Shown here: positions 1 through 53,942 of the stretch, piece after piece
How positions within the stretch are numbered: the stretch's first letter is position 1
How the letters are laid out: every line of letters starts with the position of its first letter
The notes under the pieces: generated by a model
What the model saw: only the letters and a program-made list of their open reading frames with translations
Databases searched by the model: none
Told to the model about the DNA's origin: nothing
Assembly (NCBI GenBank): GCA_009103225.1
Contig: RHPI01002368.1
Coordinates: forward strand, 202,772-266,771
Length of the DNA stretch: 64,000 nt
From: Chlorokybus atmophyticus
Lineage: Eukaryota; Plantae; Mesostigma and Chlorokybus algae
Reading direction: 5' to 3'
Position numbers and translations under genes: made by a program

Positions 1-1785
1 CCGCGGTGAGACAGCGATATCGACCGCTACAGATCGTGGACATCTGCGTCCCGGCAGTATCGCAGATGCAGTTTCATCCATTCACTGTGAGTGATGTGAA
101 GAGTGGGAGTGAAGGAAGCACACTCACACTCTTCATCAAGCACTATGGGAAGTGGACTTCACGCCTGCACGCGCTCGCAGCAGATGCCAAAGGGAGAGAT
201 ATATGCGTGCGTGTCACCGGGCTATACGGCCTCGATGACATCAGCTCCTACTCCAAGTAAGAACTCTGTATATCTACTCTCTGCATGTGTGTGTGTGTGT
301 GGCTCAACGTCTGTCTTTGCATGTGTCAGTCACTGCCTGTTGTAGTCTATGTGTGCGTATGTGTGTACGCGCGTGTGTCTGCGTGCGTGCTTACACGCAT
401 GCGTGCGTGGGTGTGTGCATCTGCGTGCTCGTGTGCATGCATGTGTGTATGTGTCACTCAGTGTCTCACACCACTGTTGTACACGACTTAGTCACTTCTC
501 ACACAGGTCCCCCCACGTCCTCTTAGTTGGTGGTGGCATCGGCATCACCCCACTCTACTCCTTGTTGCGTGGCTTCGCTCGCTGTTCATCCTCCTCCACA
601 CTCCAGTCCATCTCACTCGTGTGGGCCGTGAGACACAAGTCCGAGACCTCCCGCATGTTGGACGGCATCCAACACGCCGTAGCGAGACTCAAGGCGAAGG
701 GCGTGAGGGCGAAAGCGCACGTGTTTGTGACGAGAGAGAGCGGGGAGGAGGAGGGGAGAGGAACACAGCCTGTGGATCTGGCCATTGATGTTGTGGGTGG
801 GAGTGAGAGCAAAGTGAGGACATCAGGACAGCTAAGGACGCCGTATAGCGAGAGAGCGCAGAGAGTCAACCTGTCGCCGGCATTCTACGCAAGTGAGTAC
901 TGCAGTAGTGTGTGTGTGTGTGCGCGTGTGCGTTCGTGTGTTGTGTGTAGCTTGCATGGGTGCAAGCATCGCTGAATGTGTGTATGTGTCTGTAGTTTAC
1001 TGCACTCTGTGCATGTGCATGTGCATGCGTGCATGATGTGAGGTGGCACACACACTCTCTCTGCATCCACGCCCATATTTCTCCTCTCTCTCTAACCCCA
1101 CATACCCGCCCACGCACGCAGCTGCCTTGATGGGTTCCTACATCGGTTTCCTGGGCCTCCTCGCCCTCTTCGTCCGTCTCATCATCTACCCTTTCGAGAA
1201 CACTTCAGAAGAAGAGGAGAGGCGGTTCTACCCGTGGGTCCAGGGAACCATCTATGCATTCGCCATGTTTGCGGGGCCCGTGCTTGTCGGGGGGGCGGTG
1301 TTGCTCTATGCGCACGGGAAAGAGAGGAGTGTAGAGGGTGGGAAGGGTGGAATCCAACTTGACGAGGAGGAAGAGGAGTTGTGCGAGGGTGTGGTGGTGG
1401 GTGGGGGCAAGGAGGCGTATGTGGAGTTCTCGTATGGAGGGAGGCCCAACGTGAATGGTAAGCATACGTGTGCATGTGTATATGTGTGTATGTATGTATG
1501 TGTGCATGCACGTGCACACGCACACGTACAGTTCTGACTCCCATGTGTTCCTGTCCCCACACAGAGATCCTCAAGGATGTTGTTGCAGCGGACCTCGACT
1601 CCCCCTCCTCCTCTCTCCGCAGCAACATTAGCATCAACAACACCACCAACAAGAAGCGCACCCTCACGGTCGTGTCGAGCGGGCCCGACAGACTCGTGCG
1701 CGCGGCGTGCCGGTGCGCGCAGAAGAGAGACAACGTGCCGGAAGATGTGGAGGTGTACTTTAACCATGCGAGCTTTGATATGTGA
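1..1785 (+). CDS. FRO: Ferric reductase oxidase (plant FRO type), 3' part; gene starts before the window
   Basis: FAD-binding motif (QFHPFTV) in exon ~1-257; NAD-binding motif LVGGGIGITP after the acceptor at ~506; two-helix hydrophobic insert (GSYIGFLGLLALFVRLIIYP...WVQG...) typical of land-plant FROs; last exon ~1566-1785 ends VVSSGP...FNHASFDM*. GT-AG introns at about 258-506, 892-1121 and 1458-1565. Confidence 0.85.
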
Positions 1786-1926
1786 AGAGGATGTGGGGAT
1801 GTCCCTCTCTCTCCTGCTATATAGCCAGAAGAAGTGTATCGTTGTATACAGCGCTTATGAGTATGTGTTGCGTACTTTGGGTAGTCACGCTTTTTGTGCG
1901 GTTGCGGTGGTAGTTGGTTGTTGTAG

Positions 1927-4900
1927 TTATTTATGATAAGAGGTTGAGAGGCACAGACTCGTTGCATAGGTGGTTGGTACGTGCGCAGCGCTTTGATGCC
2001 CACTAGGCGGATTATATAGTTGTTTACTTTGCTGGCGCCTAGTCTCTCTCATGGCAGAGTGTGTGTGCGCAACGCACACTCTTTCTCCCTGCGCGCGCGC
2101 GCGTGTGTGTGTGTGTGCGTGCGAGTGCATGCGCCCGTGCGCGTGTGACGTGCAAGTGTGTGCACATGCTACTCTTTCTCCCACACACACACACGCGCAC
2201 GCACACAGGCACGCCTGCACGCCCGCACACACACCCACACACTTGATGTCCAATGCATGTTATGTTCAGCAGGCTGCTTAGTGTATCTACAGAGCCTATG
2301 CAGCTAAGGCGTCAATATCGGCAAGCTGAGTTCGATACTCGGCACATGCACTCTGCTCGCCACGGCCGATATCGCTGCACCTCCCATAGATTTCTGCAGC
2401 TGCGGCACCGACATCTCTCCCAGCAATCGGCTATGGCTTGTATACACATTGGCCCCATACCCCTCTTTGCCTCTCTTGTATGTTGGGTTGTTGTGTGCGT
2501 GTCTCATTGATGATAATGCTGATGTTGGCTCGGGCGACATCATGACGGGAGACAACATAACAACATTGACGGCCTTCTTGTGTTGTTGGGTGATATCGCC
2601 GTCGCGGGTGTTATATTCAGCGTCTTCTTGCGATATCGCCAACACGGGGGATGATGATGTTGGGATGATGTTGTTACTCCTCTTGTTGGTTGTGTATCTG
2701 TTGTTGTTGGTTTTGAGCGCTGCATTGTCTCTGTGTTGCCTTTTCAACGCTGCAAACTTCACGTAGTTGCTCGCCGACCTCGGCGGGAACCTCATATGAG
2801 CCTCCTGTTGAGTGTGGGTATGTGAATTGTGTCACAACAACATGTGTCACACAATGACCCAACATGAGGTAACCTCACCTCGTTGACTTGTGTTGATGTT
2901 GTCGGCATCATGTTGTTCGCCCTGCTCGCATTCTCATACAAGCTGTTGAGAGGCATTCTCTCGCGTGCAAGTGTCAAGTGCCGAACCAACAGCGGCACAT
3001 TCATCGCGCCTGTAAGACACATATGTTGGTCTCCCACTGGGTGTGAAATCCTTCAAGCGCGCACACGCATGCAGATGCACGTACACACGCACACAGGCGC
3101 GTGTGCGTGTTGACTCACATGCATACCTGCGCAAAGGCGTGCTTGCGCACATATGCGCGTACGCGTATGCGCACGCACACGCACATGCCCACGCCCACAC
3201 CCACACCCACACATGCACACACACCTGCATGCAGCCCTTCGAGCCTACCAGGTGCACTCTTTTCCCCCTGCACCCCGACGAAGAAGTCCGCCAGCCTCGG
3301 TCCCGACATCGACGCCGGCATCGACGATATAGCCGAAGAAGGCGACATCACATAAACCGCCCTTCTCCTACCAGAATAAAAGAGAGACCCAATATATAAC
3401 CCAACCTCACACAAGGATAACACATCTACACACACTCACTTGTGTGCTGCGCGCAGTTTGCGTGCCGTCCCGCGTTGGTATGCAAGCATGGGTGATGCGT
3501 ACATATCGGCTCCTGAGGAAGGATATCCGGCCCCGTCGAGGCGGATGCGCTGCTGCCAGGAGGCCGATATCGAGTCGGAGGGGAGGTCTAAGGCGACCAC
3601 GGCGGGAGAAGCCATGAATGCCCTGCGGGAGATATGTGGCTTTGTGACTATGTGTTGGGTTGCATGACAATACAGAGATACACACGTGCTCGCGCACATG
3701 CACACACGTATACGCGCACGGATGCAAACGCACAAATGTGCGCACACGTGTGCATGTGCGCGTACACACACGCGCGGGCGCGCGCACACTCGCGCTTGCA
3801 CTCAACTGTGCACGTGCACGTGCACACGCACACAACATGCTGTACCTCCACACCCACTCGCACAAGATTACATGTAGACTTGCAAGCAGGCACGCTTGTG
3901 CACAATTTGCACACATATGCGCACACCGATACAAGTGTGCACGCGCGCGCACACTTGCCTGCCGGTTGCTGTTGGGGTGCGAGCGGTCGATTCACCTTCT
4001 CCAGCGCTGCGCTGCGTGTCCACTCGCAGCTTGTGTTGTTGTGTTGTTGGGGACGACGCCCTCACCTGTGGGTGTACGCGCGTGTGCACGTGCTCGTGCG
4101 CGTGTGCGTGTGCATGTGCCCGCGCGGGTATGTGCACACGTGTGTTGACAACATCAACAACTGCTGCAAACAACACAACAACATCATGTGATCCCTTACA
4201 TCATTCTGTCGGCTCTGAGGGCGTGAGCGCGACGTTGATATCCCCGTCGGTGTTGAGGCTCTCGACGGCGTATCTCTTATGTTATCTCTAATATCTCTGA
4301 TATCTTCTCCTCCTTCCCCAACATGTTCCCTCTCTCTCACCCTATTCACTTTACCTCCTTTTCCCCTGACGTGGATATCATTGAAGTCCCAGTTGACATT
4401 GACGTCGACATCGCCTCCACTCGTACTTGCGTTGCCTCGCTTTCCTCCAGCATTCCAACCGATATCGCTGTCACGTGAACCCGATATCGGCTCCCCGTTC
4501 GGACCCAGCCCGCCGATGTAAGCAGCAGAGCTGTGCAGTAGGAAGAGACAGTGTGGGTGTTGTGTCGAGATGCAACAGCATGTGTGTATATGGTATGTGT
4601 ATACGCTACAAAGGCGCACGCACACATGCGCGCGTGCATGCACGCACACGCACACACACACTTACGTGCCACTTGTGCCCGCTATCTTCCAACTCTTATA
4701 CGTGCCGTCACGCTCCATATCACCCTCATGACCACCTTCTTCGCTCCAGTCCCTGCTACAACCCACATTAGCCACACTCGCACACACACACACGCGCACA
4801 CGTACACCCGCGCACACACACACAAGCTCTCGCCTTGTAGTTGTGTCGGCAACGGCGTGTGCTCTGTTGTTGGCTTGGTGTGAAGGTGTTGTCGGCCTCT

Positions 4901-7750
4901 CGCGCGCGTGAGCTCTGCTTGCAGGCCGACTGTTTGCATTGCCGTTGTCGTGTGGCTGCGTTGGGTCTTGTTGATGTTGTTGTCGTTGGGTTGTTGGACT
5001 AGGGGCTCCACGTGTCTTGGAAGAAGCCCCACCTCGCTTCACACCACCACTCCCAACATGCTTGTTGCTCTTGCTGTTGTCCTCGTTGTCGCTGTCATTG
5101 TTGGTGCTGCTGCTACCATTGGCGTGGTTGTCGGTGGAGCTGCTGCTGTTTAGGTGGTTGTCCTTGTCCTTGTCCTTCTCCTTGTTGTTACTGTTCTTGT
5201 TGTCCTTGTTGTTGTTGTTGTGCTTGCTGTCCTTTCTCGCCCGTGCATTCTTCCCGTCGATATCACCCCCATCCCCACTCACAGACCCTTCTCTATCAGC
5301 CCTTGAGCGACTTCTATTCACTTCTCTGCTCTTAGGCCTGGACCCCGACATTCCCGCCTTGGCCCCGATATCCACCATTTCCTCGATGTCAATGAGGTTA
5401 TCATCCCCGTCAACGATACACTCCACGTCGCGGATATCTTTACGAAATTGAGTGATATCTTGCACGGGTGGCCACGGCGCCAAAGACACCCCCTGAAGGA
5501 GTCTATCAAGAAAGTGTGCATAGTCGTTCGCATCGATGCCATCCACCCACATATCCGCGAGCTCGTACATCCCGTCGAAGAAAGACATCTCGCTCATGAC
5601 AGATATCGAAGACATATTCTCCCCTCCACCCCCCGTATCGGCGATCCAATCCTCCTCGGCAACGATATCATCCTCGACATAACCCGGCACTAAAGCCTTG
5701 TGAATAAGCTTATTCATGAGGATATAGTCGTCATGATGAAGCGTATTGTTGTTGTTGTTGTTGTTGTTGTTGTCTCCTCTCCTCTTTGGTGCTACAATCC
5801 ACCACCTCTTTATCGCCGACACAACGAGTGGATGTTTCCTCAACGCTCGTCTCTTTCTCAGATTATCCATGGTGTACATGTCCAAGTTGCCTTGTTGTGC
5901 GTACGACGTGGACGCGAGGGCGGCGTTGTCCTCCACCTCCGCCACGACGTGGGCGCGCGCGACGGCCTCGCGCGCGTTGGCGGCGTCGAGGGCGTACTGA
6001 GCCGCGCGGAGGGAAGCGACGTGTTGGAGTGTGGCGGCGGCGGAGACGGAGGAGCCGGCGCGGTGCCAACGCTCGCAGACGAGGGAGATGCCAGCCTTCT
6101 TGGTGGTGGTGGTGTTGTTTGTTGGTTCATCGCTCGGCTTGAGAGAGGTGAGGCGCTGGGGTGGGGGTGGGGGTGGGTTAGTTAGTGTGCGTGTGCATGT
6201 GTTGTGGTGTGTATGATGTAACAACAGCGAGGACGGTGCAAAGATACTGACGGATGCGCGTAGATGTGGATGCATGTGCGCGTAAACACACGCACGCAAT
6301 CACGCACGCATGGCGAGCGCAACTGCACACGCACACAGTGCATATGCGCACATGCTCGCACACACACATACGCATAGGCGGGGATGCGCACATGCACACG
6401 CCTGCATGTATATGCGTGCTTGCTAACACGCAGACAGGGGCACGCACATACACGCAGACGCACATGTGTACGCACACACGCACAACTCTGGACAACATGT
6501 CTGTGTTTGCGCGCAGGCACGCACAGGTGCGTGCACACACGCAGAAGAGACACACATGTGCTGGATGTGTGCGCGCGCGCGCACACACACGTCATTGTTG
6601 TGATGCTGCACACAGTGAATATCTGCAAACGTGTTGAACGCCTGCAAACACGTCTGCAAATATCACAAATCTTCGATTACAGCAACAAAGCAAGCATTGT
6701 TTACCAGAAACTGCAACAAGTCCAGTTCACCACCTCCACCCCAGTAAGAACAAAGATTGTATGACTGGCAATCTGCTGCAAAACTTCCCATGCAGCACTT
6801 GAAAAATTCACATAACGTATGCATTGTAACATCCCTACCTGTACGTGCACTGAATTTAGCAGGCTGGTACAAGTTATTGGCGGTGTAACACCGCCGGTGT
6901 TAGACTGCGCGTGCGTGTGTGTAACTATTACCATCATTATACAATATCATCAGTGTGTTTATCCAATTCACCTTGAATGCGGACGGTCGTAGATTCCCCA
7001 GCCCTTTCCCCACTCTTCCCACTCTCTTCCGCACCCTATGCCCTCTATAACACCTCTGGATCAGCAGCGCCGCCGCCACCACCGCCGACGTCGCCACGTC
7101 CGTCAGGAGAGGCGTGCGGCGTCCTGCCTCGTCGCCACTGCCCTCCATCTCCGCCGCCGCCGCCGCCGCCGCCACCGCCGCCAAGGCGTTACACAGCGAT
7201 GCTGGACTAGCCTCTACAGACCGCCACGTGGCAGCGCGAATGCGACTTGCAATCAAGTCACGTGATCCTTTTAGGTCAGTCAAGCGCCAGGTCCTGCGAC
7301 CATAAGTTTTGGAAAGAGCCTTTCTCAGGGATCAGACCTTCCTGGAATGGGACTGGATGGGACGCAAGGGTTGATTGTAAACGTGGCTGGTCCTGAGCGG
7401 TAGATACTACGGCCAATATCTTTGCTGATATAGCAACTGATATAGCAATATGGTACACACTATGCTAATAAACAATAATTTGCTGTCGCGCACTGTCCAA
7501 TTCACACTACGTGATAGCCTTTGCATAGCCTTTGCATGAGCATGCTCATGTACGACCCCGGCGAAAAGCTAGCGTGCATCGACAATGGCGTCGTCGGTGG
7601 GCACGGCGGCGGCGACGGCGGCGCTGGCTGTGTCGGCGGTGCCGGCGGGGCCGTCCTCATCGTCGTTGTCATCTTCGAGTAGAAGGCACAGGCCGGCCTC
7701 GTCGCCGGCTCGGCTTTCGCGGACGCCTGCGGCGAGGCAGCGTCTACTGT
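1927..7750 (-). CDS. Multi-exon gene for a large protein with an IQ calmodulin-binding motif, a conserved-looking helical domain and long low-complexity regions; function unknown
   Basis: IQ motif AALLIQRCYRGHRVRK in exon ~6972-7330; long exon ~4834-6150 with globular-looking segment LRKHPLVVSAIKRWW...AEEDWIAD...FFDGMYELADMWVDGIDANDYAHFL; further coding-like exons near 4660-4755, 4190-4525, 3440-3640, 3230-3400, 2870-3010, 2300-2800 and 1927-2060, separated by GT/CA-rich introns. Start and some junctions are uncertain. Confidence 0.6.
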
Positions 7751-8242
7751 ACTATAGCAGGTGAGGCATGGCCTGGTCTGGCTGCCTTGACTTGGCCTGG
7801 CTTGGCTTGGCTTGGCTTGGACTGTTCTGGCCTGGTTTGGACTTTAGTCGGGTCTCTCTCGAGCCCCATTCACGGTGGTTGGGCGACTGGCGATTGTCTC
7901 TCATACGTGTGGTCTTAGCAAATAGCAGGCCTGCCAAGGATCACGCAAACCCTATTCTTGCATTGGGAGGCGGAATTGCAGTTCAACCTGTTTGCATGGT
8001 TGTTTTCACACGCTAAATACGTAGATGTTGTGGTACATATGAACAACATTCTGTTTGCTGATCTGGTTGTATTCATGAGCTGCTATTATCACGCATGCTG
8101 CTTGTTGTGCTCGGATCATTGGCTTGGTTTGTGCGCTGGTGTTTAACGTCTTTTCAGGACACTACTACTATCACAATGAGCCTGGGTCATGTTGGTTAGA
8201 TTAATTGTGGCAGCTAGTTAGGTGTTATAGCCTTTCACGAAA

Positions 8243-11200
8243 ATGGCAAGTTGGGTTACACTTGTGAATTGCGCAAAGATTGTGTTCGTGTGTGGTGTCT
8301 CTCGCTCTATCGGCCGTCACTTCCACAGCAAAAGCCGCTAACCTCTTTGTTTGTTCTCAACAACTGCCACAGATCAACAAGGTCTCTTTCATCCACGCAC
8401 ACGTCATCTCCCTCACCTTCAAGACGCGTGTCTCAACGGCGGACATGGAGCACAAGTGATGATAATTGTATTGATGATCATGTTGGGTTGCGGCGCTGCG
8501 CGGGGACGTTGTGGAGCCTCAGAACAAGGCGGGGGCGGGGGTTCGTGGCGGGAGCACAACATGTTGGGTGAGTGGTTGGTTGATGTGCGTGCAGCTGTTG
8601 TTTATATTGTGATGTGAGTTTCTGTTTAAGTTGCCTTGTTGCTTGGGCATACAAACTAAGGACACGTTTTTGCCATGAACACAATGTAAACATTTGTGTC
8701 CTTGCCTTGTTTTGCCTTGCCGTTGTTTGACAAAATACTGTAGCACATCTTGTAGAGTGCCATGAACAGGTTAACTTCGTTTGACATAAATGTGTAGCAC
8801 ATCTTGTATACTGTAACAATCTAACGGGGTCAACCACTAGTTAGCAGTGGTGAAGTGTTGCTGACAGTCTTCATGGACAAAAATTGTTGGAGAGTTTGAC
8901 CATGCTCAACATTCCAATTTAAACGTGTGCAGTTCGCCGCCGCGTTGCAATTGCCATATCTCCTCTTCTTCCTCCTCCTCACCGCAACCGTCACAACAAC
9001 AGCCCGCATCCCCACAACAGCACCCTTCTCGCGCCTCGCACGTGCGACCTCCCGACGCCGTCGCCGCGCACACGACCCTTGCCGACACGACATCTCACCC
9101 TCTTTACTCCCCCTCAGACGACGATATCGACACCCTCCCCCCCATCGATATCAACGCCCTATACCAAACACCTCTGCCGTCGCACCCGAAACTAATCCGC
9201 GGCACGCTCGATAACGGGCTTAAGTACGTGGTGTTGCCCAATCCGGTTCCACCGAGCCGGTTTGAAGCTCATCTTGAAATCGGTGTTGGGTCCGTTGATG
9301 AAGAAGATGATCAACAAGGACTCGCGCATCTGATTGAACACGTGACGTTTTTGGGGTCGAGAAAGAGGGAGAGATTGCTCGGGACGGGCGGGAGATCCAA
9401 CGCGTACACTGATTTTCACCACACGGTGTTCCATGCACACATGGCTCTCACTGTAAGTAGATGTTGCTTTCAGTTGCAGAGCTTTGGTAGTGCTGCGTCT
9501 GTGCGCTCTTGTATTTATGTTGTTGTCTGTTGCCGTGGGATGGTCTTTTGTGTGGGTATTTGTGTGGGTGCAAGGATGTTACCTGAGTGGTTTGGTCTTT
9601 TGTGCCGTGGGTTGGTCTTTTGTGTGGGTATTTGTGTGGGTGCAAATGCGTGTACACGCGGGTGTGCGCACGTGTTCATAAGCATGTGCAAGCGGGAGCG
9701 CGCGAGTACGCGTGTGCATTGTGCGTGTGCTTGCCACTGAGCTTTTCAACTGTTGTGACACTGATGTTATCGATCTTGTTGTGCACAGGATGAGAGCACA
9801 GGTGCAGAGTTGTTGCCCGCCACGCTGGACGCCCTGGCTGAGATTGCCTTCGAGCCGCAGTTTCTGCCTTCTCGCATTGAGAAAGAGCGCCGCGCAGTCC
9901 TGTCTGAACTTCAAGTAAGTGTTGGTTCCGTAAAGGAAGTAAATGTGTAGAACGATCACACATACACTTGTTGGTGTGATGTGTGTGTCAACTATCTGTG
10001 TGTTGGGTGTGTCTAGTTGTATGAATAGGTAGTCGAGTGATGTCGTACACTTCTGTGCACCTTTTATGAATGGAGAACTTTATTGTAGATTTGGGCAAGT
10101 ACAGATTCAGATCGTATATAGTGCGCACGCATGTATGTGCGTACGTGCGCGTGCGCGCATCATACATGTTGAGTTGGCGCGTACGTGTATGCGTATTTGT
10201 CCTGTTGCTTCTTTTGTCAAATGTGCTCGGCAAATGCTGCGTGCGTGTGTTGATGCGTTTGCTTTTTACACAGATGATGAACACGATGGAGTACCGGGTC
10301 GACTGCCAGCTTCTTCACCACCTGCACTCGGAGAACAAGCTCAGCTGCCGCTGCCCCATCGGACTCGAGGAGCAGATCAAGCAGTGGGGAGCCGCAGAGC
10401 TCAAAGAGTTCCACCGCAATTGGTAACATTTGTTGTTGTTGTTGTTGTTTGTGTTGTGGTGTGTAGTTGTGTCGCATTCCTGGTATGTCATGGATAGGTT
10501 GTGGTTGGGTTGTGCGTTGTGTGTGATATGCACACAAGGGTAAGCTTGTATGTTAGATAAGGGTGTGCCTGTTATTAACTACATGCATTGCGGGTGTGTA
10601 AACTGTACAAGCAGTTGAGGGCGCACGCGTACGCGGATACAACCGTGTGCACAAGTGTACTTGAGCGCCTTGATTTGCATGTGCAACGCACCCACCCACA
10701 CTGTCAGTCTAGTATAGACATTCAAGCTTTGATGTCAATGATGTTTGTTTACGTGCGCCTCTGTGTGTGCTTGTACAAAAGCCTACATGTAGAAGAGTTC
10801 CAGCAGATGCATTTGCACACATTTATGTGCTACATACGTTTATGGTGACGTGTTGTTATGTGTGTTAACAGGTACTTCCCCGCAAACGCGACACTCTTCT
10901 TGGTGGGCGATTTCCCTTCCGTCCCGCATGTGATATCACTCATCCACTCGTCTTTCGGTCGGATATCCGCCGACCCGGGCTCTGTCGCCGCCGCCGCCGA
11001 GGCGCTTGAAGCCGATATTGTCGTGGGTCTGATGGAGATATCTTCTCCCAACACGAGCACCGACACAACTATCAACCGTCCCCCGCCCCAACCCACGCCG
11101 ACACGTCCCCCCGTCATGCACACCTACTCAACACAACATCTCCCACCCGTCTCACCCAACATGTTCAAGCACCCCCTCCTACAACAATTCACCCTCTCGC

Positions 11201-12805
11201 TCATGGCAAAAGACCCCGTTGTTAAAGTGGACAACTTGGGCGAGTTGAGGCGTGTACTCATGTCGCGTATAGTGGTGGCAGCCTTTCAGTTCAGAATCAA
11301 TACGAGGTACGAATTGGCCAACCCGCCGTGCATGTGTGTGTGGGGATGTGGCGCACGTGTGCGTGCGTGTTGCCTGTTTATTGTTGTGTTGGTCTATATG
11401 ATTGTATGTGGTTATGTCATATCAAGCCCACATTCACACAGGTATAAAATGGCCAATCCGCCGTTCAGTTCGATCGATCTGGATCGGTCGGATTCGGCGA
11501 GAGAAGGATGCGCGGTTACGGCGTTGACGATTGTGGCGGAACCTAATGAGTGGAAAGGAGCCGTGCAAGTGGCCGTGCATGAGGTGAGTGTAGTCAGTTG
11601 TTGACGTGTTGTGTGTTTGTTTGGTCTTGGCTCCCCCTTTTTATCTTGTTTTTTTGGCTTGACGAATTGGGTAATTGTTGGTCTTCGCTCTTGTTGTGTA
11701 TGTGTACGCGCATGTGTGTGTGTGTGCGGATGTTTCACTCATGCATGAGCGCGCACGTGCGTGCGTGCATGCGTGTATGTATATATGGGATCCTTGTCGT
11801 GTCATAATATGTGGTTGTACGCATCGCCCGGTTATTACCAACCCTTCTCTATCTCTATCGTGTGTCCTACTCCCCCCTCCCCTCAGGCCCGTCGCCTCTT
11901 CGTCCACGGCGTGACCGCCTCCGAGCAGGCACGCTACCTCTCGGCCCTTCTGAAAGACTCCGACCAGCTCGCGGCCATGGTCGGGCAGATCCCGAGTCTC
12001 GACAACCTCGACTTCGTCATGGAGAGCGACGCGCTGGGGCACACCGTCATGGACCAAGTACAGGGACATCAGGTGAGAGAGAGGGAATGTTGGTAGGGAT
12101 GGGGGTGGGGGTGTTGTTGTTGTCGTCGGTGGCGGTGGTGATGGTGGTGGAATGTTGGGTGAGGGAGGTGAGGTGGAGTGCGTGTGCAAACTGCTTGCGT
12201 GTATGTGCCTTGACTAGGTACAGAAAATTAGCGACTTTTGAGTGTGTATGTGCAAGCCTTACATGCAGCGCACACCTGCATGCAGTGTATGCTGCAAGCG
12301 TACAGTGGCACATATGTATATCGTCGTGTGCCTTTTAATTTTGCGCGTGGTCATATGCACGCATTCTTAAGGGCATGCGCGCACGCGCAAGTGCATGTGC
12401 ATGTGATGTGCATGCACGTGTGCTCAATGCGTAATATGCCGTGACTGCAGATATATCTACAGTTACACAAGAGGCATGCGCACGCACACACACTTCCTCG
12501 CAAGTTACGCACGCACTCACTCTTACGCACACACGTCTACACGTGCAGGCCCTGCTTGAGGTCGCGGACACGCTGACGCTGGACGAGGTGAACGCCGTGG
12601 CACGCGAGCTGCTTGCCTTCGTGGCGGACTTCAACGAGCCGCACGCGCCAAAAGCCTCCGCCGTCGTCGCCTGTGTGCCGCAACACCAACAACAACACGC
12701 CAACGCGACGGAGACGCCCGCGACGTTTGATGTATCCGCCCAGGACATACTTGATGCAATTGAGGTGTGTTGGTGTTGGTGTTGGTGTTGTCGTTGTCGT
12801 GGTTG

Positions 12806-12837
<32 letters not shown>

Positions 12838-15800
12838 GGAATATGTGCAAAGATGCTGCCTGTAAGTTCCACAGTCTGTAGTGTGTGTGTGTGAGCGTGT
12901 ATCTGGGTATGCGTAGGTGGGTATGCACTTGTGTACGCGTGTATGCGAGCCTTCATTGTATATATGCGAGTGTGCGTGAGCCCGCGCGCGCGCACTTTTG
13001 CATGTGGACACATGCAAGAGTGTGCCCAGCCACACATGCAGAATGCGCGTGCATGTGCAATCTGCATGCATGCGTGTACACAAGTGTAAAAACCAACCTT
13101 TCTCCCCACACCAACAGGAAGCCAAGGCGATTGAGACTTTGGCCGAGCCTGATCTCGTCGTCCCCCGCGCGTTGATATCGGACGAGCAGCTCTCCACACT
13201 CATTCACAACAGCACCTTTTCGTTTGCTGATATGGGCGACGGGACCGATATCGCACACGACGAAGCCACGGGCATCGTCCAGCGACGCCTGCATAATGGG
13301 ATCAAGGTTAACTATAAACAGACGTCGAATGAAGCGAGGGGAGGAGCCATGAGGCTCGTCGCTGCAGGTGGGTGTGGGGTGGGGTGGGGTGGGGTGGTGG
13401 TTGCGTGACATCTACATTGCACGAACACACACTGTACACGTACATGCGTGCGCGTGTGTTTGTATCACGCGTGTTTTTTGTGTGCGTATGCGTGTATGCG
13501 TGCGCTCTGTGTTCGTGCAAGTTCAATGCCAGTCAAATGTGTAGCTTGAGAGTGAGCTACACATTTCCTTTTCGTTTGTCGATGTCAGTGCCTATAACTG
13601 TGTGTGTGCAACTATGTTACCTAAGGTGTGGTCGTTGGTTCTGGTGCATATTATGGGATTTGTATGCGGTTAGATGTTAGTCTTATTACTGTAGCAAGCC
13701 TATACTATGAGTTTCAAGCAGCGCAGCTTATTTTTATCGAGGTACATGTTTCCTGAGTTACGTCTTTTGCAACAGGTGGCAGGGCGTTGGAACCCAAAGA
13801 TGCCATTGGCTGTGTTGCCGTTGGCACCCGTACCCTCAGCGAAGGGGTAAACCGCCGTAAACCCACATTTCATTCTCAACACACACATTTTATGCTGATC
13901 GAGTCATACACATCACGACATATTGCGGTATACAGGGCGCAGTGGGGAGGTTTTCAAGGGAGGAGGTTGAGCTTTTCTGCGTGTCCAACCTAGTTAACTG
14001 TGTGGTGGAGGCGGACGAGGAGTTCTTGTGCATGGATTTCCACTTCTCCTCTCAACCATCCGCCCTTTCTGCTGCCTTCCAAGTAAGCACGTACACATGT
14101 GTTTGTGCTTGCATGTGCGTAGTGTGGTATTGACAACATGTGCTAAGTTTGCACGTTTTTCCATTGCAGGTGCTTCATCTTGTGTTGGAGCAGCCTGTCT
14201 GGTCTGCGGATGCGCTCGAAAGGGCCAAACAGCTGTACGCGTCGCATTGGAGAGGCATCCCAAAGTCGCTGGAGCGTGCAACTGCCAACAGGTGTGCTGA
14301 GAAGAGTGTGTTAGACACACAATGACATTATGTACTTCACACAAGAGCGCATTCGCGGGGACTCGTGCACGCGTGCGGGCGCTGCACATATATACGCAGG
14401 TCTTGGTTGCACACATGCACACACATGCACATGTGTGTGTGTGTGCGCCCGTGCACTCACCCACATGCATGCGCACACACATACATGCACGCACATCCAC
14501 AAACATCTACACATACATACTTACACATGCGCGCGTGCAGGTTAATGCGGGCGATGTTTGGGGGTGACGGGAGGCTGCTTGACCCGAGTCCCTCGGAGGT
14601 GGCGGCACTCACGCTGGAGGGCGTGCAGCGCGCTGTGATGGAACAACTTGTCACAGGTAAGAGAAGGGGGAACAACAACAACAACAACATCAGATCACAT
14701 GGAGCTACTATGTTTTTTCTGTTTCTATGGCATACTACGCGGTCGTCGTTGCATAGCACTGACTCACACATTGCTGTGCGGAACAGTAGTTAGTGTTCAT
14801 GTACTCGTATCCTGCACTGCAGTCACGTTTCTGGTATCTGTGTATGCATCTAGACTGTGTGGTTCGACTCACGCCATGTTTGTTGGTCTCATGCAGACAA
14901 TGTAGAGATTGATATAGTTGGCGATTTTGATCCCGCCGAGCTGGAGCGCTGCATACTGACTTATCTCGGCACCGTGAAACCGCGCCTTGGTAACAGCAGC
15001 CACTTACAGAAGCAGGAGAAGCTCTCGGTGAGTTGAACTGTTTTATGTGCATGTTGTGTCAAGTACCCATTGCTGTATACACACAGCGTTACTCTGTGCA
15101 CGATGTGTTGTATATCACAACTTGTCATGTAATTTGTTATGTACGACACAACTTCCTTTGTGTTGCATATGATGTTGTCTTTGAACTTCAACTGTTGTGT
15201 GTATGTGCGTGTCTATCAGATATCAAGCAGTGTGCCCGCAAGTTCGAGGAGGCAGCGGTTATATCTGCGGGATTCAGACGAGAGGGCATGTGCTTATCTG
15301 GCGGGCAGGGCTCCCAACAGGTGGGGTTATCTTGATATCGGCGAAAGGTCTGATACTGGACCCTCTCGCGACGATATCAGCGAGAACCCTGAAGCCACCG
15401 TGGGCGCGATAGAAGAGGGCAGGACCGATGTCGGCACCGCTACTACCAGCAGCAGCAGCAGCACATATGTTGGCACGTGTGCCGATGTCAAAGACAATAT
15501 TGTTGATCTGAATGTGGCACTGTCGTATGCACCCGCCGAAGCCACACCAGAACAGCTCGCAGCATTGGGTTCCGGCATTGAGGTAGCAGCATTGCAAAAG
15601 TCGTGACATGGTGTTCATAACAAGCGCGTGTGTGCGTGTCTGTGCGTGCGTGCGTGTGCACGCGCATAGAACTCACACACATGCGTATGTGTGAGTTCAA
15701 AAGTGTCCAAACATTGCCTCGCACAGCCCAGTTAGTCTCGAGTAACCCACACACGATGTATCTTCATCCTCGGTGTTGTTTGTGCAGGTAAGGTGGGACG

Positions 15801-17136
15801 AGAGGGCGGGGAAGCATGTGCTCGTGAGGCCGCGGCACCCGCTGTGGGCCGCGGTGTCGATGGGCCTGCTGACGGAGGTCGTCAATGCGCGCCTATTCAC
15901 CACAGTACGTGACGCCATGGGCCTCACATACGACGTCGGCTTCGAGCTCTCTTTATTCGACCGCCTCAACACTGGATGGTACGGCCATATGTGTGTGTGC
16001 GTGCGGGTGTTCGCATATGCATATGTACGTGCGTACACACGCACATACACACCCAGCACACGCACGCACGCATGTGTGCGTGCGTGCCTGTTAGTGCATC
16101 TATGCGTGCATGCTTGTGTGCGTGCGTGTTGCATGTGTATGCACACGCTTTCCATAGGCGTGTAATTGTGTAGTCTGTGCCTCTTTACTTATGCATTTCG
16201 TATCCTTTGTGTCAGGTTTGTGGTGAGCGTGACGTCGACGCCAGCAAAGATCGAGGAGGCGCTCCAGGCGTCTGTTTCGGTGCTGAGGGGCATCAAGTCG
16301 AGCCCCGTGACGCACCGCGAGCTCGAGCGCGCCAAACGCACCCTACTCACGCGCCACGAGAGCGACCTCAAGGACAACAATTACTGGCTGGGCCTCCTCA
16401 CACACCTCCAGGTGCGCGAGATAGAGAGAGAGCGTGTGTGTGTGTTTGTGACGAGGTTGTTTGTATGGCTGGCAGCAGACCAAATGCAATGGTTGTCATT
16501 CGAGCACTCACTTGTTGACTGCATGGTTGGTGTTTGGACTGATCAACTGTCTGATGACTCACTCTCTGTTTCGCTCACCCTACTTTTCATTGATTGACAG
16601 ACCATTCATTGGGTCATCAGTTTGAATGCGTGCAGTGGTCATGAATTGAAACCGTGAAATTGACTGGTTGCTGTCTCAGGCGGACTCGGTGCCGAGGAAG
16701 AGTGTCGGTTGCGTGCGCGACATGCCGTGGCTCTATGAGAATGCCACAGTGCAGGACGTTCAGGAAATGTGAGTTTGCCGCTTGTGGCCCCGCCCCGCCC
16801 CAACAACAACATGCACATGCATGTTACGTTTTGTCAAATGTCTCAGTCTGTGCGGGTTAGATGTAAACTTGCTTGATACTGTGCAGTTACGACGCATTGG
16901 ATTTGAGGGATGAGGCCATCTTCACGAGCGTGGGTGTGGCGGGGCGGCGAGATCCTAGCGACGCCGGCGACATCGACCCGGCGGACTTTGTTGATGCGCA
17001 ACGCATTGATGAGGAGATTGGCGATGATCTCGAGGACGACGTGAACACCCCACATCTCGACGCCTTCCCGGGGGCGATGACGTCGCATGGGCGCGGGCGG
17101 TCAATGGTGACTCTGCCTACCACCGATGCGTTGTAA
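8243..17136 (+). CDS. SPP: Chloroplast stromal processing peptidase (M16 insulinase-family zinc metalloprotease), about 20 exons
   Basis: HxxEH motif in GLAHLIEHVTFLGS; plant SPP-like blocks LPSHPKLIRGTLDNGLKYVVLPN, SNAYTDFHHTVFH, ENKLSCRCPIGLEEQIK, WYFPANATLFLVGD, ELINARLFTTVRD-like EVVNARLFTTVRDAMGLTYDV, ESDLKDNNYWLGLLTHLQ and C-terminal GRGRSMVTLPTT. Exons approximately 8933-9452, 9789-9914, 10274-10422, 10872-11306, 11442-11583, 11887-12072, 12549-12764, 13118-13367, ... 16888-17136. An S/T/R-rich transit-peptide-like exon lies at ~8360-8568; the exact start codon (candidate ATG 8243) is uncertain. Confidence 0.93.
9531..9645. repeat. Near-perfect 43-bp direct repeat within an SPP intron
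   Basis: TGCCGTGGGATGGTCTTTTGTGTGGGTATTTGTGTGGGTGCAA at 9531-9573 and the same with one substitution at 9603-9645. Confidence 0.9.
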
Positions 17137-18183: not shown

Positions 18184-21251
<3,068 letters not shown>

Positions 21252-46400: not shown

Positions 46401-47702
46401 NNNNNNNNNNNNNNNNNNNNNNNNNNNNNNNNNNNNNNNNNNNNNNNNNNNNNNNNNNNNNNNNNNNNNNNNNNNNNNNNNNNNGGGGGATCGCTGCCCT
46501 TATCGCCGACATAACCAACAACTGGCCAGCAAGTCAACTAGGAGAAGGGTATTTACCACAAGGAGCACACCCTCATCTCGCTGGTCAGCAAACATATGGG
46601 GAGCAGCAGTTGCGCACACGCCTGTTGCAGGAAGGAAGCCATTCAGGGAACGTTGCAACAAGAAGGTCTAGCAGGCGCTACACTCGGAGGGATGCTGCGG
46701 CTGCAGCAAACCATGCACAAATGGGCTCAGGTACTCGCGTGGTTGATTAACAACCGCCCTGCAGTCCCACATTGCGCGTGCTTACCACGCCTGCAATAGA
46801 TGAGTGCATTCATGCGCTCTGTACGCATGCGTACGACCAAGTGACGGACCAGCTGCGTCCCTACGGCATCCATGACAGAGTCACCATGGAGGTCACCTTC
46901 ATACACCTACCAGGCATAAGGCAGCATGACAACTTCGGCGCATCGCAGGCGCATGACAACCAGCGTCGACAACAGGACTCGCCCGACACACTGAGGGTGC
47001 GGGCCATGGCAGTGATTGATATAGGGATCACTGGAGGCAGGTGGGACGCATACGGAGCACCCTCGGGATACCCACCATTGGCGAAGCATTGAGAAGGCAG
47101 CTGGTTTGGGCCGTCTACCTCACGCCCTTGCCTCAGGTGGAGGGTTTTGACAACTGGCATTATCACCTCTCGGCCACCTGAGAGGGCACCCTCGTGTGAA
47201 GGCCGCTCATGCAGTCCATTAGACAAAAAGAGGCAGAGTGGCAGCAAGTGAGCGCGTTTCCACCATCACCACCTACAGCAGCTGGCATCGACCCGACACC
47301 TCGTTGCAACCCACCACCGATGCCGGCACCTCTAGGCTAGGGGCGGGGGGGTCAGGCTGGATAGGGGGGTGCATAAGGACAGGGCATAGCTTCCGTTGCA
47401 GGCAGAGGAGCCATGGCAGCCTTGAGGTCCAGCACCCTGGAGCCGCACCCTACTGCAGATGCTGTCCCTCGACCCAACTCAATGACTGCGCACGGCTCAA
47501 CGCCAACGCCGTCGTGGTAGCCAACCAGAGCACACGTGTGTGCAAATCGACGGACGTACGCCGCAGCGCGTCGTGTTGGTGGAGGGGCGCAACCATGCAT
47601 CATCGGCAGACGTTGGGCTAAGGCCTTGGGTCTCACCGTGGCGTCCCTGAACAGCTGCCCTTTTAAGATAAACACGGCCACGGGAGGACGAGAAAGCCCC
47701 GT
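43436..47702 (+). mobile_element. Degenerate Ty3/Gypsy-type retrotransposon: gag with two CCHC knuckles, long unknown region, aspartic protease remnant; truncated by a chromovirus LTR
   Basis: Capsid-like YLALRHTFSPQTSQKVEELRHFMRKAGEDPLRMYTRM; knuckles CPQCGRHHHDQKDC and CDHCHKNGHLEAVC (~44780-44890); protease-like RVVLV(fs)GAQPCIIGRRWAKALGL...CPFKINTATGG (~47570-47700). Many stops and frameshifts; gap at 46359-46484. Confidence 0.7.
46337..46489. other. Assembly gap flanked by poly-G
   Basis: Ns at 46359-46484 with G runs on both sides; same pattern at 56327-56475 and poly-G at the window end. Confidence 0.95.
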
Positions 47703-48031
47703 TGGTAAGGAGGGGTGCTACCGCCCCTGCAATCCCCTACCCCAACACCGCTACGTCGCCGACACCGCCGCTGCTGGGGGCCATTGCCGGAGCAGAAGTT
47801 CCCCTGGCTATGGCGGCCGCTGCGTTAACAGTGCCGCCATACAGCTGATATCGACACGAGACTCATGTCTCCTGTTGATATCAATGTTACAGATAAGTAA
47901 CATCACATTAAAGCCGTAACATAGGTTAACGACCTTAATACGGCTTAATTGGCTGTATATACCCGTTGAGACCCTTGTTTAATCCTCCAGATAAGGGCGG
48001 GGAACCTCTATAGAGGTAGCACTCCATTACA
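47703..48031 (-). repeat. 3' LTR of the minus-strand chromovirus
   Basis: TG...CA ends; polypurine tract AAGTGGGGGGGAA immediately inside (48032-48044); homologous to 56141-56624; contains the palindrome ACCTCTATAGAGGT. Confidence 0.85.
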
Positions 48032-52430: not shown

Positions 52431-52908
52431 GCAGCTGGCATCGACCCGACACCTCGTTGCAACCCACCACCGATGCCGGCACCTCTAGGCTAGGGGCGGG
52501 GGGGTCAGGCTGGATAGGGGGGTGCATAAGGACAGGGCATAGCTTCCGTTGCAGGCAGAGGAGCCATGGCAGCCTTGAGGTCCAGCACCCTGGAGCCGCA
52601 CCCTACTGCAGATGCTGTCCCTCGACCCAACTCAATGACTGCGCACGGCTCAACGCCAACGCCGTCGTGGTAGCCAACCAGAGCACACGTGTGTGCAAAT
52701 CGACGGACGTACGCCGCAGCGCGTCGTGTTGGTGGAGGGGCGCAACCATGCATCATCGGCAGACGTTGGGCTAAGGCCTTGGGTCTCACCGTGGCGTCCC
52801 TGAACAGCTGCCCTTTTAAGATAAACACGGCCACGGGAGGACGAGAAAGCCCCGTTGGTAAGGAGGGGTGCTACCGCCCCTGCAATCCCCTACCCCAACA
52901 CCGCTACG
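52431..52908 (+). repeat. Apparently identical 478-bp copy of 47278-47755, ending at an N (52909)
   Basis: No differences seen by eye, including homopolymer lengths; covers the host-element protease and the first ~50 bp of the left LTR. May be an assembly duplication. Confidence 0.9.
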
Positions 52909-53516: not shown

Positions 53517-53942
53517 CAGGGTACCAGCCGTCCTTGAATTGTAGCTAAGAGTCCGTGACTAACGCGAGGGTTGATTAGTATTGCCAACACACTGCACTGT
53601 CCCTATTTCACGCTTGCTAAATTGCTTGAGCACAGTACCCCCCCGAGTATGCCTTAACCATTGGCTATGATACTTTGGCACCATCACCACCATATGTAAA
53701 ATGCTGTGCTTCTTTTGCAACTCAACCATTGCATGCAACACATCAGTAAGCATGTTGAATTCCACATGTACCAGCACACAAGCGTTGTTTTTCACTTTTC
53801 CCATATTAAAAGGTGGCAACTTGTTATGTGCGTGCCATGCATGTGTTATTACATGCACTTGGGACAGATCATCAAACCAGTTTGTTGCATGCATTTCAAG
53901 CAACTGACCATTAACCATCTCTACACAAGTAACGGCGTAATC
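53517..53942 (-). other. Extra domain between gag and protease, resembling a degenerate Dam-like N6-adenine methyltransferase fold
   Basis: In frame with both gag and protease, separated from each by a single TAG. The pattern WFDDL...HA...NKLPPFN...CVLVHVEF.MLTDVLH...MVVMVPKY.SQWL...RGGTVLKQF parallels retrotransposon Dam domains, but the NPPF motif position reads HVEF. Confidence 0.45.

Follow-up and report, generated by a model that had tools for sequence, protein, structure and literature searches.

In bacteria, uptake signal sequences (USS), DNA uptake sequences (DUS) and Chi sites accumulate in genes, preferentially within weakly constrained parts of proteins and in the reading frames that tolerate them. 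Exonic splicing enhancers are strand-specific words found close to splice sites, and short or weak exons depend on them most. A palindromic system is known from cyanobacteria, whose highly iterated palindrome HIP1 (GCGATCGC) is spread genome-wide on a bacterial chromosome, inside reading frames as well as between them (Xu, Lawrence & Durand 2018, PMC5861425). The present analysis concerns the palindrome GATATC in a 64,000-nucleotide stretch of the early-branching streptophyte alga Chlorokybus atmophyticus (contig RHPI01002368.1, positions 202,772 to 266,771; the whole stretch is called the window, and positions are counted from its first letter), where it is repeated across exons of nuclear, intron-containing genes. 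The pattern is a nucleotide-level, gene-specific iterated palindrome in these genes. Two neighbouring ones, an orphan gene referred to as G2 and the gene for stromal processing peptidase (SPP), contain GATATC at about four times the number that their proteins and codon habits account for. As far as found, the iterated-palindrome pattern is known from cyanobacterial genomes, and no description of it for nuclear genes was found in the literature.

HIP1 and GATATC are alike in several respects. Each is a short palindrome that greatly exceeds its expectation and lies in coding sequence in all frames, at a cost to codon and residue choice; each has an unexplained function, a CGAT half-site and discussed links to DNA methyltransferases. 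The many-fold excess of a palindrome and its embedding in all coding frames, beyond what protein and codon usage account for, are both found here. Unlike HIP1, GATATC differs between neighbouring genes and shows no excess in introns, untranslated regions (UTRs) or transposable-element DNA that would compare with the exons. As for over-representation between genes, which HIP1 displays, it is absent from the window: introns and UTR plus intergenic DNA have 0 sites, and 42.7 kb of gene-poor DNA has 11 where 4.7-6.4 are expected.

The window contains 42 copies of GATATC, 27 of them within 16-15378 and at exactly the positions reported in an earlier note on this DNA, which had been made from the letters alone. 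Dinucleotide shuffles of the whole window produce a mean of 7.0 copies and a maximum of 16, and a hexamer ranking of the first 15.4 kb places GATATC as the most over-represented word, above microsatellite words. The coding statistics draw on three genes with ~7.8 kb of coding sequence in total, according to our own gene models: G2, SPP and the 3′ part of a ferric-reductase/NADPH-oxidase-like gene. When synonymous codons are shuffled within each gene, with protein and codon usage fixed, 7.2 copies are expected, and 0 of 2000 shuffles reach 27. A dicodon shuffle, which fixes the protein and all dinucleotide counts, also gives an expectation of 7.2, with a maximum of 16 and 0 of 500 shuffles reaching 27. 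The excess thus persists under control for amino-acid pairs and codon usage, the comparison on which the earlier note had let its case depend. Shuffling codon order in the three genes yields an expectation of 2.4; taken together, the values of 2.4, 7.2 and 27 correspond to an approximately threefold excess in protein sequence and a further fourfold excess in codon choice.

Among all 4096 hexamers, GATATC takes rank 1 in the coding sequence, with a z value of 8.8 against the synonymous shuffle, while the top words of control coding sequences from other green organisms in the same test have z values of 4-6 and 3-9 copies. Exons contain 26 sites versus 1.2-3.9 expected from Markov models of order 1-2, a 7-20-fold excess by our own ratios, compared with 15-300-fold for HIP1. 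No other palindrome in the coding sequence is enriched against the synonymous shuffle, and neither are the half-site spacing variants GAT(N1-4)ATC, so that the zero-spacing arrangement of GAT and ATC is alone enriched.

The 27 sites are distributed over all three reading frames. Frame GAT ATC is observed 14 times (6.1 expected), frame G ATA TC 11 times (0.8 expected) and frame xGA TAT C twice (0.3 expected); this 14/11/2 split bears out the earlier description of sites in all three frames, including the five uses of ATA in SPP. Peptide contexts able to encode GATATC number 41, of which 27 are realised. Asp-Ile pairs are written GAT ATC in 14 of 23 cases, versus 26% from codon usage, and the dipeptide itself is 3.5 times over-represented (23 versus 6.6 expected from composition), with Ile-Ser reaching 1.9 times its composition-based expectation. 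Among the 16 Ile-Ser pairs whose serine is TCN, 12 use the otherwise rare ATA, 11 of these 12 being preceded by G, and 11 of the 22 ATA codons in total lie inside GATATC. The centre of the palindrome is TpA, a step otherwise avoided in the exons (observed/expected 0.56). GATATC is therefore written into exons both via synonymous choice and via amino-acid replacement at weakly constrained positions. The core proposal of the earlier note, a signal at the DNA or RNA level that overlies coding sequence, is in this way supported by the shuffles, the codon and dipeptide counts and the realised contexts. Two further features of word usage were seen in the three genes: GATC falls below its synonymous shuffle (18 versus 28.7, z −2.5), which may only be because GAT codons are tied up in GATATC, and ATGTTG, TGTTGG and (CAA)n are over-represented on the exon sense strand.

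The excess is distributed unevenly among the genes. Against synonymous shuffles, G2 has 16 sites versus 3.4 expected and SPP has 10 versus 2.4, whereas the ferric-reductase-like gene has 1 (site 16, CGA TAT CGA) versus 1.4 and hence no excess. The enrichment that had been described across three adjacent genes consequently holds for G2 and SPP and does not extend to the third. Regarding realised contexts, the values are 16 of 20 for G2, 10 of 16 for SPP and 1 of 5 for the ferric-reductase-like gene, which is only 500 bp away from G2; the pressure thus acts on particular genes and not on the region. In four other green-lineage sources, the SPP coding sequence contains 1-2 sites versus 0.5-1.5 expected. 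Since none of the four shows an excess, the excess is a property of the lineage, not of SPP as a gene.

Introns, UTRs and transposable-element DNA are without the exon-level enrichment. In 7.35 kb of intron there are 0 copies of GATATC; this zero is not itself significant, because Markov models built on intron composition expect only 0.4-0.75. The term "exon-restricted" used in the earlier note is accordingly valid for a contrast in enrichment, but not for a depletion in introns. The ~3 kb of complex intron, i.e. intron of ordinary sequence, has 0 sites where exon density would give ~10, and 1.9 kb of UTR and intergenic DNA has 0 where it would give ~6 (both values are our estimates). The gene-poor, transposable-element part (21-64 kb, 42.7 kb) contains 11 sites versus 4.7-6.4 expected, about twice the expectation. 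As for the remaining ~48 kb of the window, which is gene-poor transposable-element DNA, the 15 sites counted previously are indeed present where 5-7.6 are expected, and 2 of the 15 are exonic Asp-Ile sites in a fourth gene.

Sites occur in 9 of 31 exons, and 20 of 22 short exons have none. Long exons hold 25 sites in 4962 nt and short exons 2 in 2873 nt (P 0.001), a preference that is largely explained by low protein conservation (residual P 0.02-0.03). Within exons the sites are dispersed through the interiors, show no closeness to splice sites and follow one another at irregular spacings of 21-148 nt; in SPP they extend from ~1.5 to ~7.8 kb into the gene, and in G2 over its full 3.9 kb. Two mechanisms offered by the earlier note fit this arrangement poorly, namely an exon-definition element, given the empty short exons, the interior positions and a long-exon bias that is mostly conservation, and a nucleosome-linker code, given spacings that lack a nucleosome-scale period.

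For SPP, protein homologues allow the sites to be placed with respect to conservation. Its 10 sites are confined to four or five of 19 resolved exons (P 0.003), and 10 of 10 lie in sequence of below-median conservation, mostly at residues that are lineage-specific in comparison with homologues. In 7 of 10 cases the site falls in ungapped alignment with homologues, and the sites are therefore mostly substitutions, not insertions. At the Leu-Ile-Ser site the residues are common to homologues, and synonymous choices sufficed. An origin of the sites from intron positions is unsupported, the exon junctions being of the ordinary AG/G type.

The symmetry of the element bears on what might read it. 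Sense-strand flanks are reverse-complement symmetric, with position −1 being C in 13 sites, T in 6, A in 4 and G in 4, and position +1 being G in 13, A in 8, T in 2 and C in 4. The resulting preference is YGATATCR and above all CGATATCG, which occurs 8 times versus 2.8 expected (P 0.005). Palindromes make up 64 of the 4096 hexamers. The palindrome, its mirrored flanks and the excess of CGATATCG point to a reading of double-stranded DNA, since a single-strand RNA motif predicts neither the palindrome nor the mirrored flanks. We therefore lean, tentatively, towards GATATC being a weakly selected or favoured double-strand site that a dimeric protein recognises on particular genes, an adenine methylase or a reader of its mark being the candidate. 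A putative dimeric, sequence-specific DNA protein would read the double-stranded hexamer on certain transcribed genes, and a weak per-site advantage or weak fixation bias would let copies accumulate wherever the encoded protein tolerates them. The most concrete putative reader would be an adenine methyltransferase with EcoRV-methylase-type specificity, or a reader of the mark that it sets; Dam-family enzymes with such specificity exist.

A wider form of this proposal is doubtful: (C)GATATC(G) would be selected genome-wide in Chlorokybus, putative sequence-specific adenine methylation would mark a class of host genes by means of it, and chromoviruses carrying Dam would imitate the mark. Long terminal repeat (LTR) elements that carry Dam have been linked to hosts with AMT1 and N6-methyladenine (6mA), and both such elements and abundant 6mA are stated to be absent from Streptophyta, according to a 2026 preprint (10.64898/2026.05.21.726589). 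No paper linking Chlorokybus with GATATC or 6mA was found in the literature. In unicellular eukaryotes, AMT1-dependent 6mA at ApT marks transcribed genes and spares transposable elements; it is not hexamer-specific, is unrelated to ApT composition, and is concentrated just after the transcription start, in linkers and with a nucleosome period (PMC12695648, the main text of which does not mention streptophyte algae). This mark shares with GATATC the ApT step, two of which are present per copy, and double-strand symmetry. The GATATC positions, in turn, show neither a concentration just past the transcription start nor a linker periodicity. Of the third candidate in the earlier note, 6mA at ApT, the classical 5′-biased form fits poorly, while a GATATC-specific methylase is conceivable.

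Several observations weigh against a double-strand reader, and against its methylation form in particular. If gene-body DNA were marked, it is hard to see why the introns of the same genes should be spared, yet ~3 kb of complex intron and 1.9 kb of UTR and intergenic DNA contain no copy; the absence from introns is easier to understand via RNA- or coding-level pressure. One-mismatch neighbours of GATATC show no clear depletion (44 versus 52 expected). AMT1-type 6mA is 5′-biased and ApT-wide, whereas GATATC covers whole genes at irregular spacing, to ~8 kb into SPP. A Dam-like methyltransferase considered at 53517-53942 was rejected, as searches of Pfam, NCBIfam and the PDB with the sole open reading frame (ORF) there, 53559-53918 on the minus strand, gave no methyltransferase match. 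Finally, all evidence comes from three to four genes in one window.

Among the alternatives, an RNA-level exonic element is possible, although on the unlikely side. GAUAUC in the pre-mRNA or mRNA would then be bound by protein or pair with itself, and would serve the processing, stability or localisation of certain transcripts. The restriction of the enrichment to host-gene exons and its gene-specific occurrence agree with such an element, as does the grouping of SPP copies by 2-3 within at most 155 nt. Site 15219 is, moreover, re-formed across an exon-exon junction in the mRNA, but this remains within chance, with ~0.5 junction-spanning sites expected over ~30 junctions by our estimate. Pairing speaks both ways: of 16 pairs of neighbouring copies, mutual pairing is predicted for 4 and not for 12, and hairpins between neighbouring copies were for this reason set aside as a candidate. 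The prior of a single-strand motif being palindromic is only 1.6%, and an RNA reader does not predict reverse-complement-symmetric flanks. Nor is the motif a general splicing enhancer, considering the 20 of 22 short exons without it and the lack of closeness to splice sites. Exonic splicing enhancers resemble GATATC as short exon-enriched words that overlie coding sequence in any frame; they differ in that the short exons here are without the motif and in that the motif is palindromic. With sites in 9 of 31 exons, away from splice sites and with strand-symmetric flanks, the features typical of such enhancers are not observed. A neutral molecular drive, in which a sequence-specific repair or gene-conversion bias converts near-matches to GATATC and the copies persist only in old unique sequence, i.e. 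protein-tolerant exons, appears unlikely, though still deserving attention. Such a bias has been proposed for HIP1, and bacterial uptake sequences provide an actual case. The turnover of introns and intergenic DNA would then be too rapid for accumulation, which suits introns made of microsatellite-like alternating tracts and a window that is otherwise young transposable-element DNA; sites do lie where protein constraint is weak, and non-genic DNA still has about twice its expectation (11 versus 4.7-6.4). The ferric-reductase-like gene, however, offers free synonymous opportunities and realises 1 of 5 (P ~0.02 at the rate of G2 and SPP, our estimate), one-mismatch neighbours are not depleted, and the ~3 kb of complex intron contains no site. 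In the case of HIP1, conservation favoured selection over repair bias (PMC5861425).

Two other explanations fare considerably worse. Footprints or ends of mobile elements, or short in-frame insertions carrying the palindrome, are largely refuted and seem very improbable. Sites often come in close pairs, and some, at nucleotides 959 and 2763 of the SPP model, do lie in lineage-specific insertions (gap fraction 0.55-0.76), but no sequence is common to the flanks or to the intervals within site pairs, 7 of 10 SPP sites are in ungapped alignment, and the shared Leu-Ile-Ser site needed synonymous choices only. The idea of a by-product of codon usage, dipeptides, dinucleotide bias or chance is refuted for these genes and retains hardly any probability. 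Its attraction is that these acidic low-complexity proteins contain much Asp, Ile and Ser and that GAT and ATC are frequent codons. Against it stand the synonymous and dicodon shuffles, none of which reaches 27, the rare ATA in 12 of 16 Ile-Ser(TCN) pairs, 11 of these 12 after G, and the central TpA that exons otherwise avoid (0.56). The bacterial USS/DUS and Chi words provide a partial parallel to GATATC, as they too prefer weakly constrained positions, just like the sites in SPP. Unlike GATATC, they are non-palindromic, orientation-dependent and tied to an uptake machinery or to RecBCD; we know of no uptake- or RecBCD-like machinery for GATATC here.

The gene models were obtained with a small exon-chaining script and then curated by eye. 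Database searches were run exon by exon, while the joined G2 and SPP models were used only in local shuffles and in local alignment with fetched homologues. On the curated models all 27 sites are exonic, one of them across a splice acceptor, just as the earlier note had claimed. The ferric-reductase/NADPH-oxidase-like gene is represented by its 3′ part at 1-1785 on the plus strand, with exons 1-256, 507-892, 1122-1457 and 1565-1785, an open spliced frame and a Pfam NAD_binding_6 match.

G2 (2304-6155, minus strand) encodes an orphan, largely low-complexity protein and has 8 exons, at 4822-6155, 4666-4755, 4200-4530, 3955-4065, 3503-3639, 3258-3367, 2864-3009 and 2304-2804. All 8 have GT..AG borders and join into a single open frame of 920 amino acids (aa), the 5′ boundary being provisional. 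No Pfam match was obtained for G2, and searches with its large exon, as well as with a chromovirus gag ORF and an acyltransferase-like exon, found no relatives. Its sites are spread over four exons: the last exon has 2368, 2592 and 2632 (2368-2637); the 137-nt exon has 3522 and 3566 (3522-3571); the 331-nt exon has 4237, 4299, 4374, 4461 and 4483 (4237-4488), with 4461 reading CCGATATCG and 4483 reading CCCGATATCGG; and the 1334-nt exon has 5259, 5367, 5433, 5454, 5602 and 5664 (5259-5669). Independent contigs of two public runs, X1 and X2, read five of these sites identically, namely 2592 and 2632 in the X1 contig and 4374, 4461 and 4483 in the X2 contig. The run contigs on G2 and on SPP exon 1 are identical to the window; their coverage is patchy, and those on G2 are possibly RNA. 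A 4105-nt contig of run X1 has an end that coincides with the SPP exon-1 donor at 7760.

The SPP gene (peptidase M16; 7585-17136, plus strand) consists of exon 1 at 7585-7760 and a further 18 curated exons, the first at 8933-9452 and the last at 16887-17136. This 19-exon model, outside which one small exon lies between 7761 and 8932, has an open spliced frame and a Pfam Peptidase_M16 match, and across 1164 aa it is 50% identical to P0008, a full-length SPP. An exhaustive search with exon 3 returned distant SPPs only, at no more than 79% identity and over the conserved part alone. Sites 9123 and 9147 (9123-9152), both GAT ATC for Asp-Ile, are in a non-conserved N-terminal stretch. Sites 10932, 10962 and 11037 (10932-11042) are all G ATA TC, within Val-Ile-Ser, Arg-Ile-Ser and Glu-Ile-Ser, respectively. 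The pair at 13174-13252 comprises 13174 (TTG ATA TCG, the Leu-Ile-Ser common to homologues) and 13247 (GAT ATC). The last group, 15219, 15334 and 15373 (15219-15378), occupies the least conserved internal exon of SPP; site 15219 straddles the acceptor (cAG/ATATC), and GATATC is restored in the spliced mRNA as tcG/ATATC.

Most introns of these genes are low-complexity sequence of alternating purines and pyrimidines (GT, GC, CA, CATG), with 66-83% alternating steps; over the introns in general the share is 60-83%, and GATATC can hardly arise in such sequence. Examples are 257-506, 3640-3954, 4531-4665, 14292-14540 and 15979-16215, which are prone to Z-DNA and without polypyrimidine tracts. A minority, e.g. 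7761-8932 and 16412-16679, are ordinary complex sequence. One SPP intron, 11307-11441, is 135 nt long, in frame and free of stops, and its start nearly copies the junction and the 5′ end of the next exon: 11304-11332 (AGGTACGAATTGGCCAACCCGCCGTGCA) and 11439-11467 (AGGTATAAAATGGCCAATCCGCCGTTCA) agree in 23 of 28 letters. This near copy could represent either a splice junction that was duplicated or a second possible start of the exon.

The fourth gene, for which a partial exon chain is available, is BAHD-type acyltransferase-like with an HxxxD motif, and its sites 19373 and 19652 (19373-19657) are both exonic GAT ATC for Asp-Ile. Its first intron contains a microsatellite of about 600 bp (18270-18880) that passes from (CT)n into (CTCG)/(CTGT) variants and includes one N at 18560. 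Copies of GATATC at 20457 and 20547 lie in an apparent 123-nt intron of the same gene, the former 19 nt past the donor AAG/GTGAGG (20438) and the latter immediately ahead of a potential acceptor; in another reading, an exon begins further upstream and includes 20547 as an Asp-Ile site. In the transposable-element part, direct repeats of 300 nt at 47278-47577 and 52431-52730, separated by 5153 bp, are 100% identical and probably stem from a recent element or duplication. The GATATC copies at 47847 and 56285 are within two diverged copies of a different repeat, and the ORF at 53559-53918, of 119 aa, is flanked in a decayed chromovirus by the gag zinc knuckle and the protease.

Codon models, gene finders and selection scans applied to the Chlorokybus genome should take the GATATC bias into account. 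In bacteria, iterated palindromes written over coding sequence have stayed unexplained after decades, and a case in spliced nuclear genes would provide a new test system for selection versus drive. It would offer introns, chromatin and sex, in combination with a signal that is exon-confined, variable between genes and strong enough to alter amino acids. The place of the Chlorokybus lineage in the history of 6mA gives weight to the question of methylation or binding. If the genome-wide adenine-methylation reading were true, HIP1 would have its first counterpart in a eukaryote, and the plant lineage would possess a 6mA gene mark specific to one hexamer.

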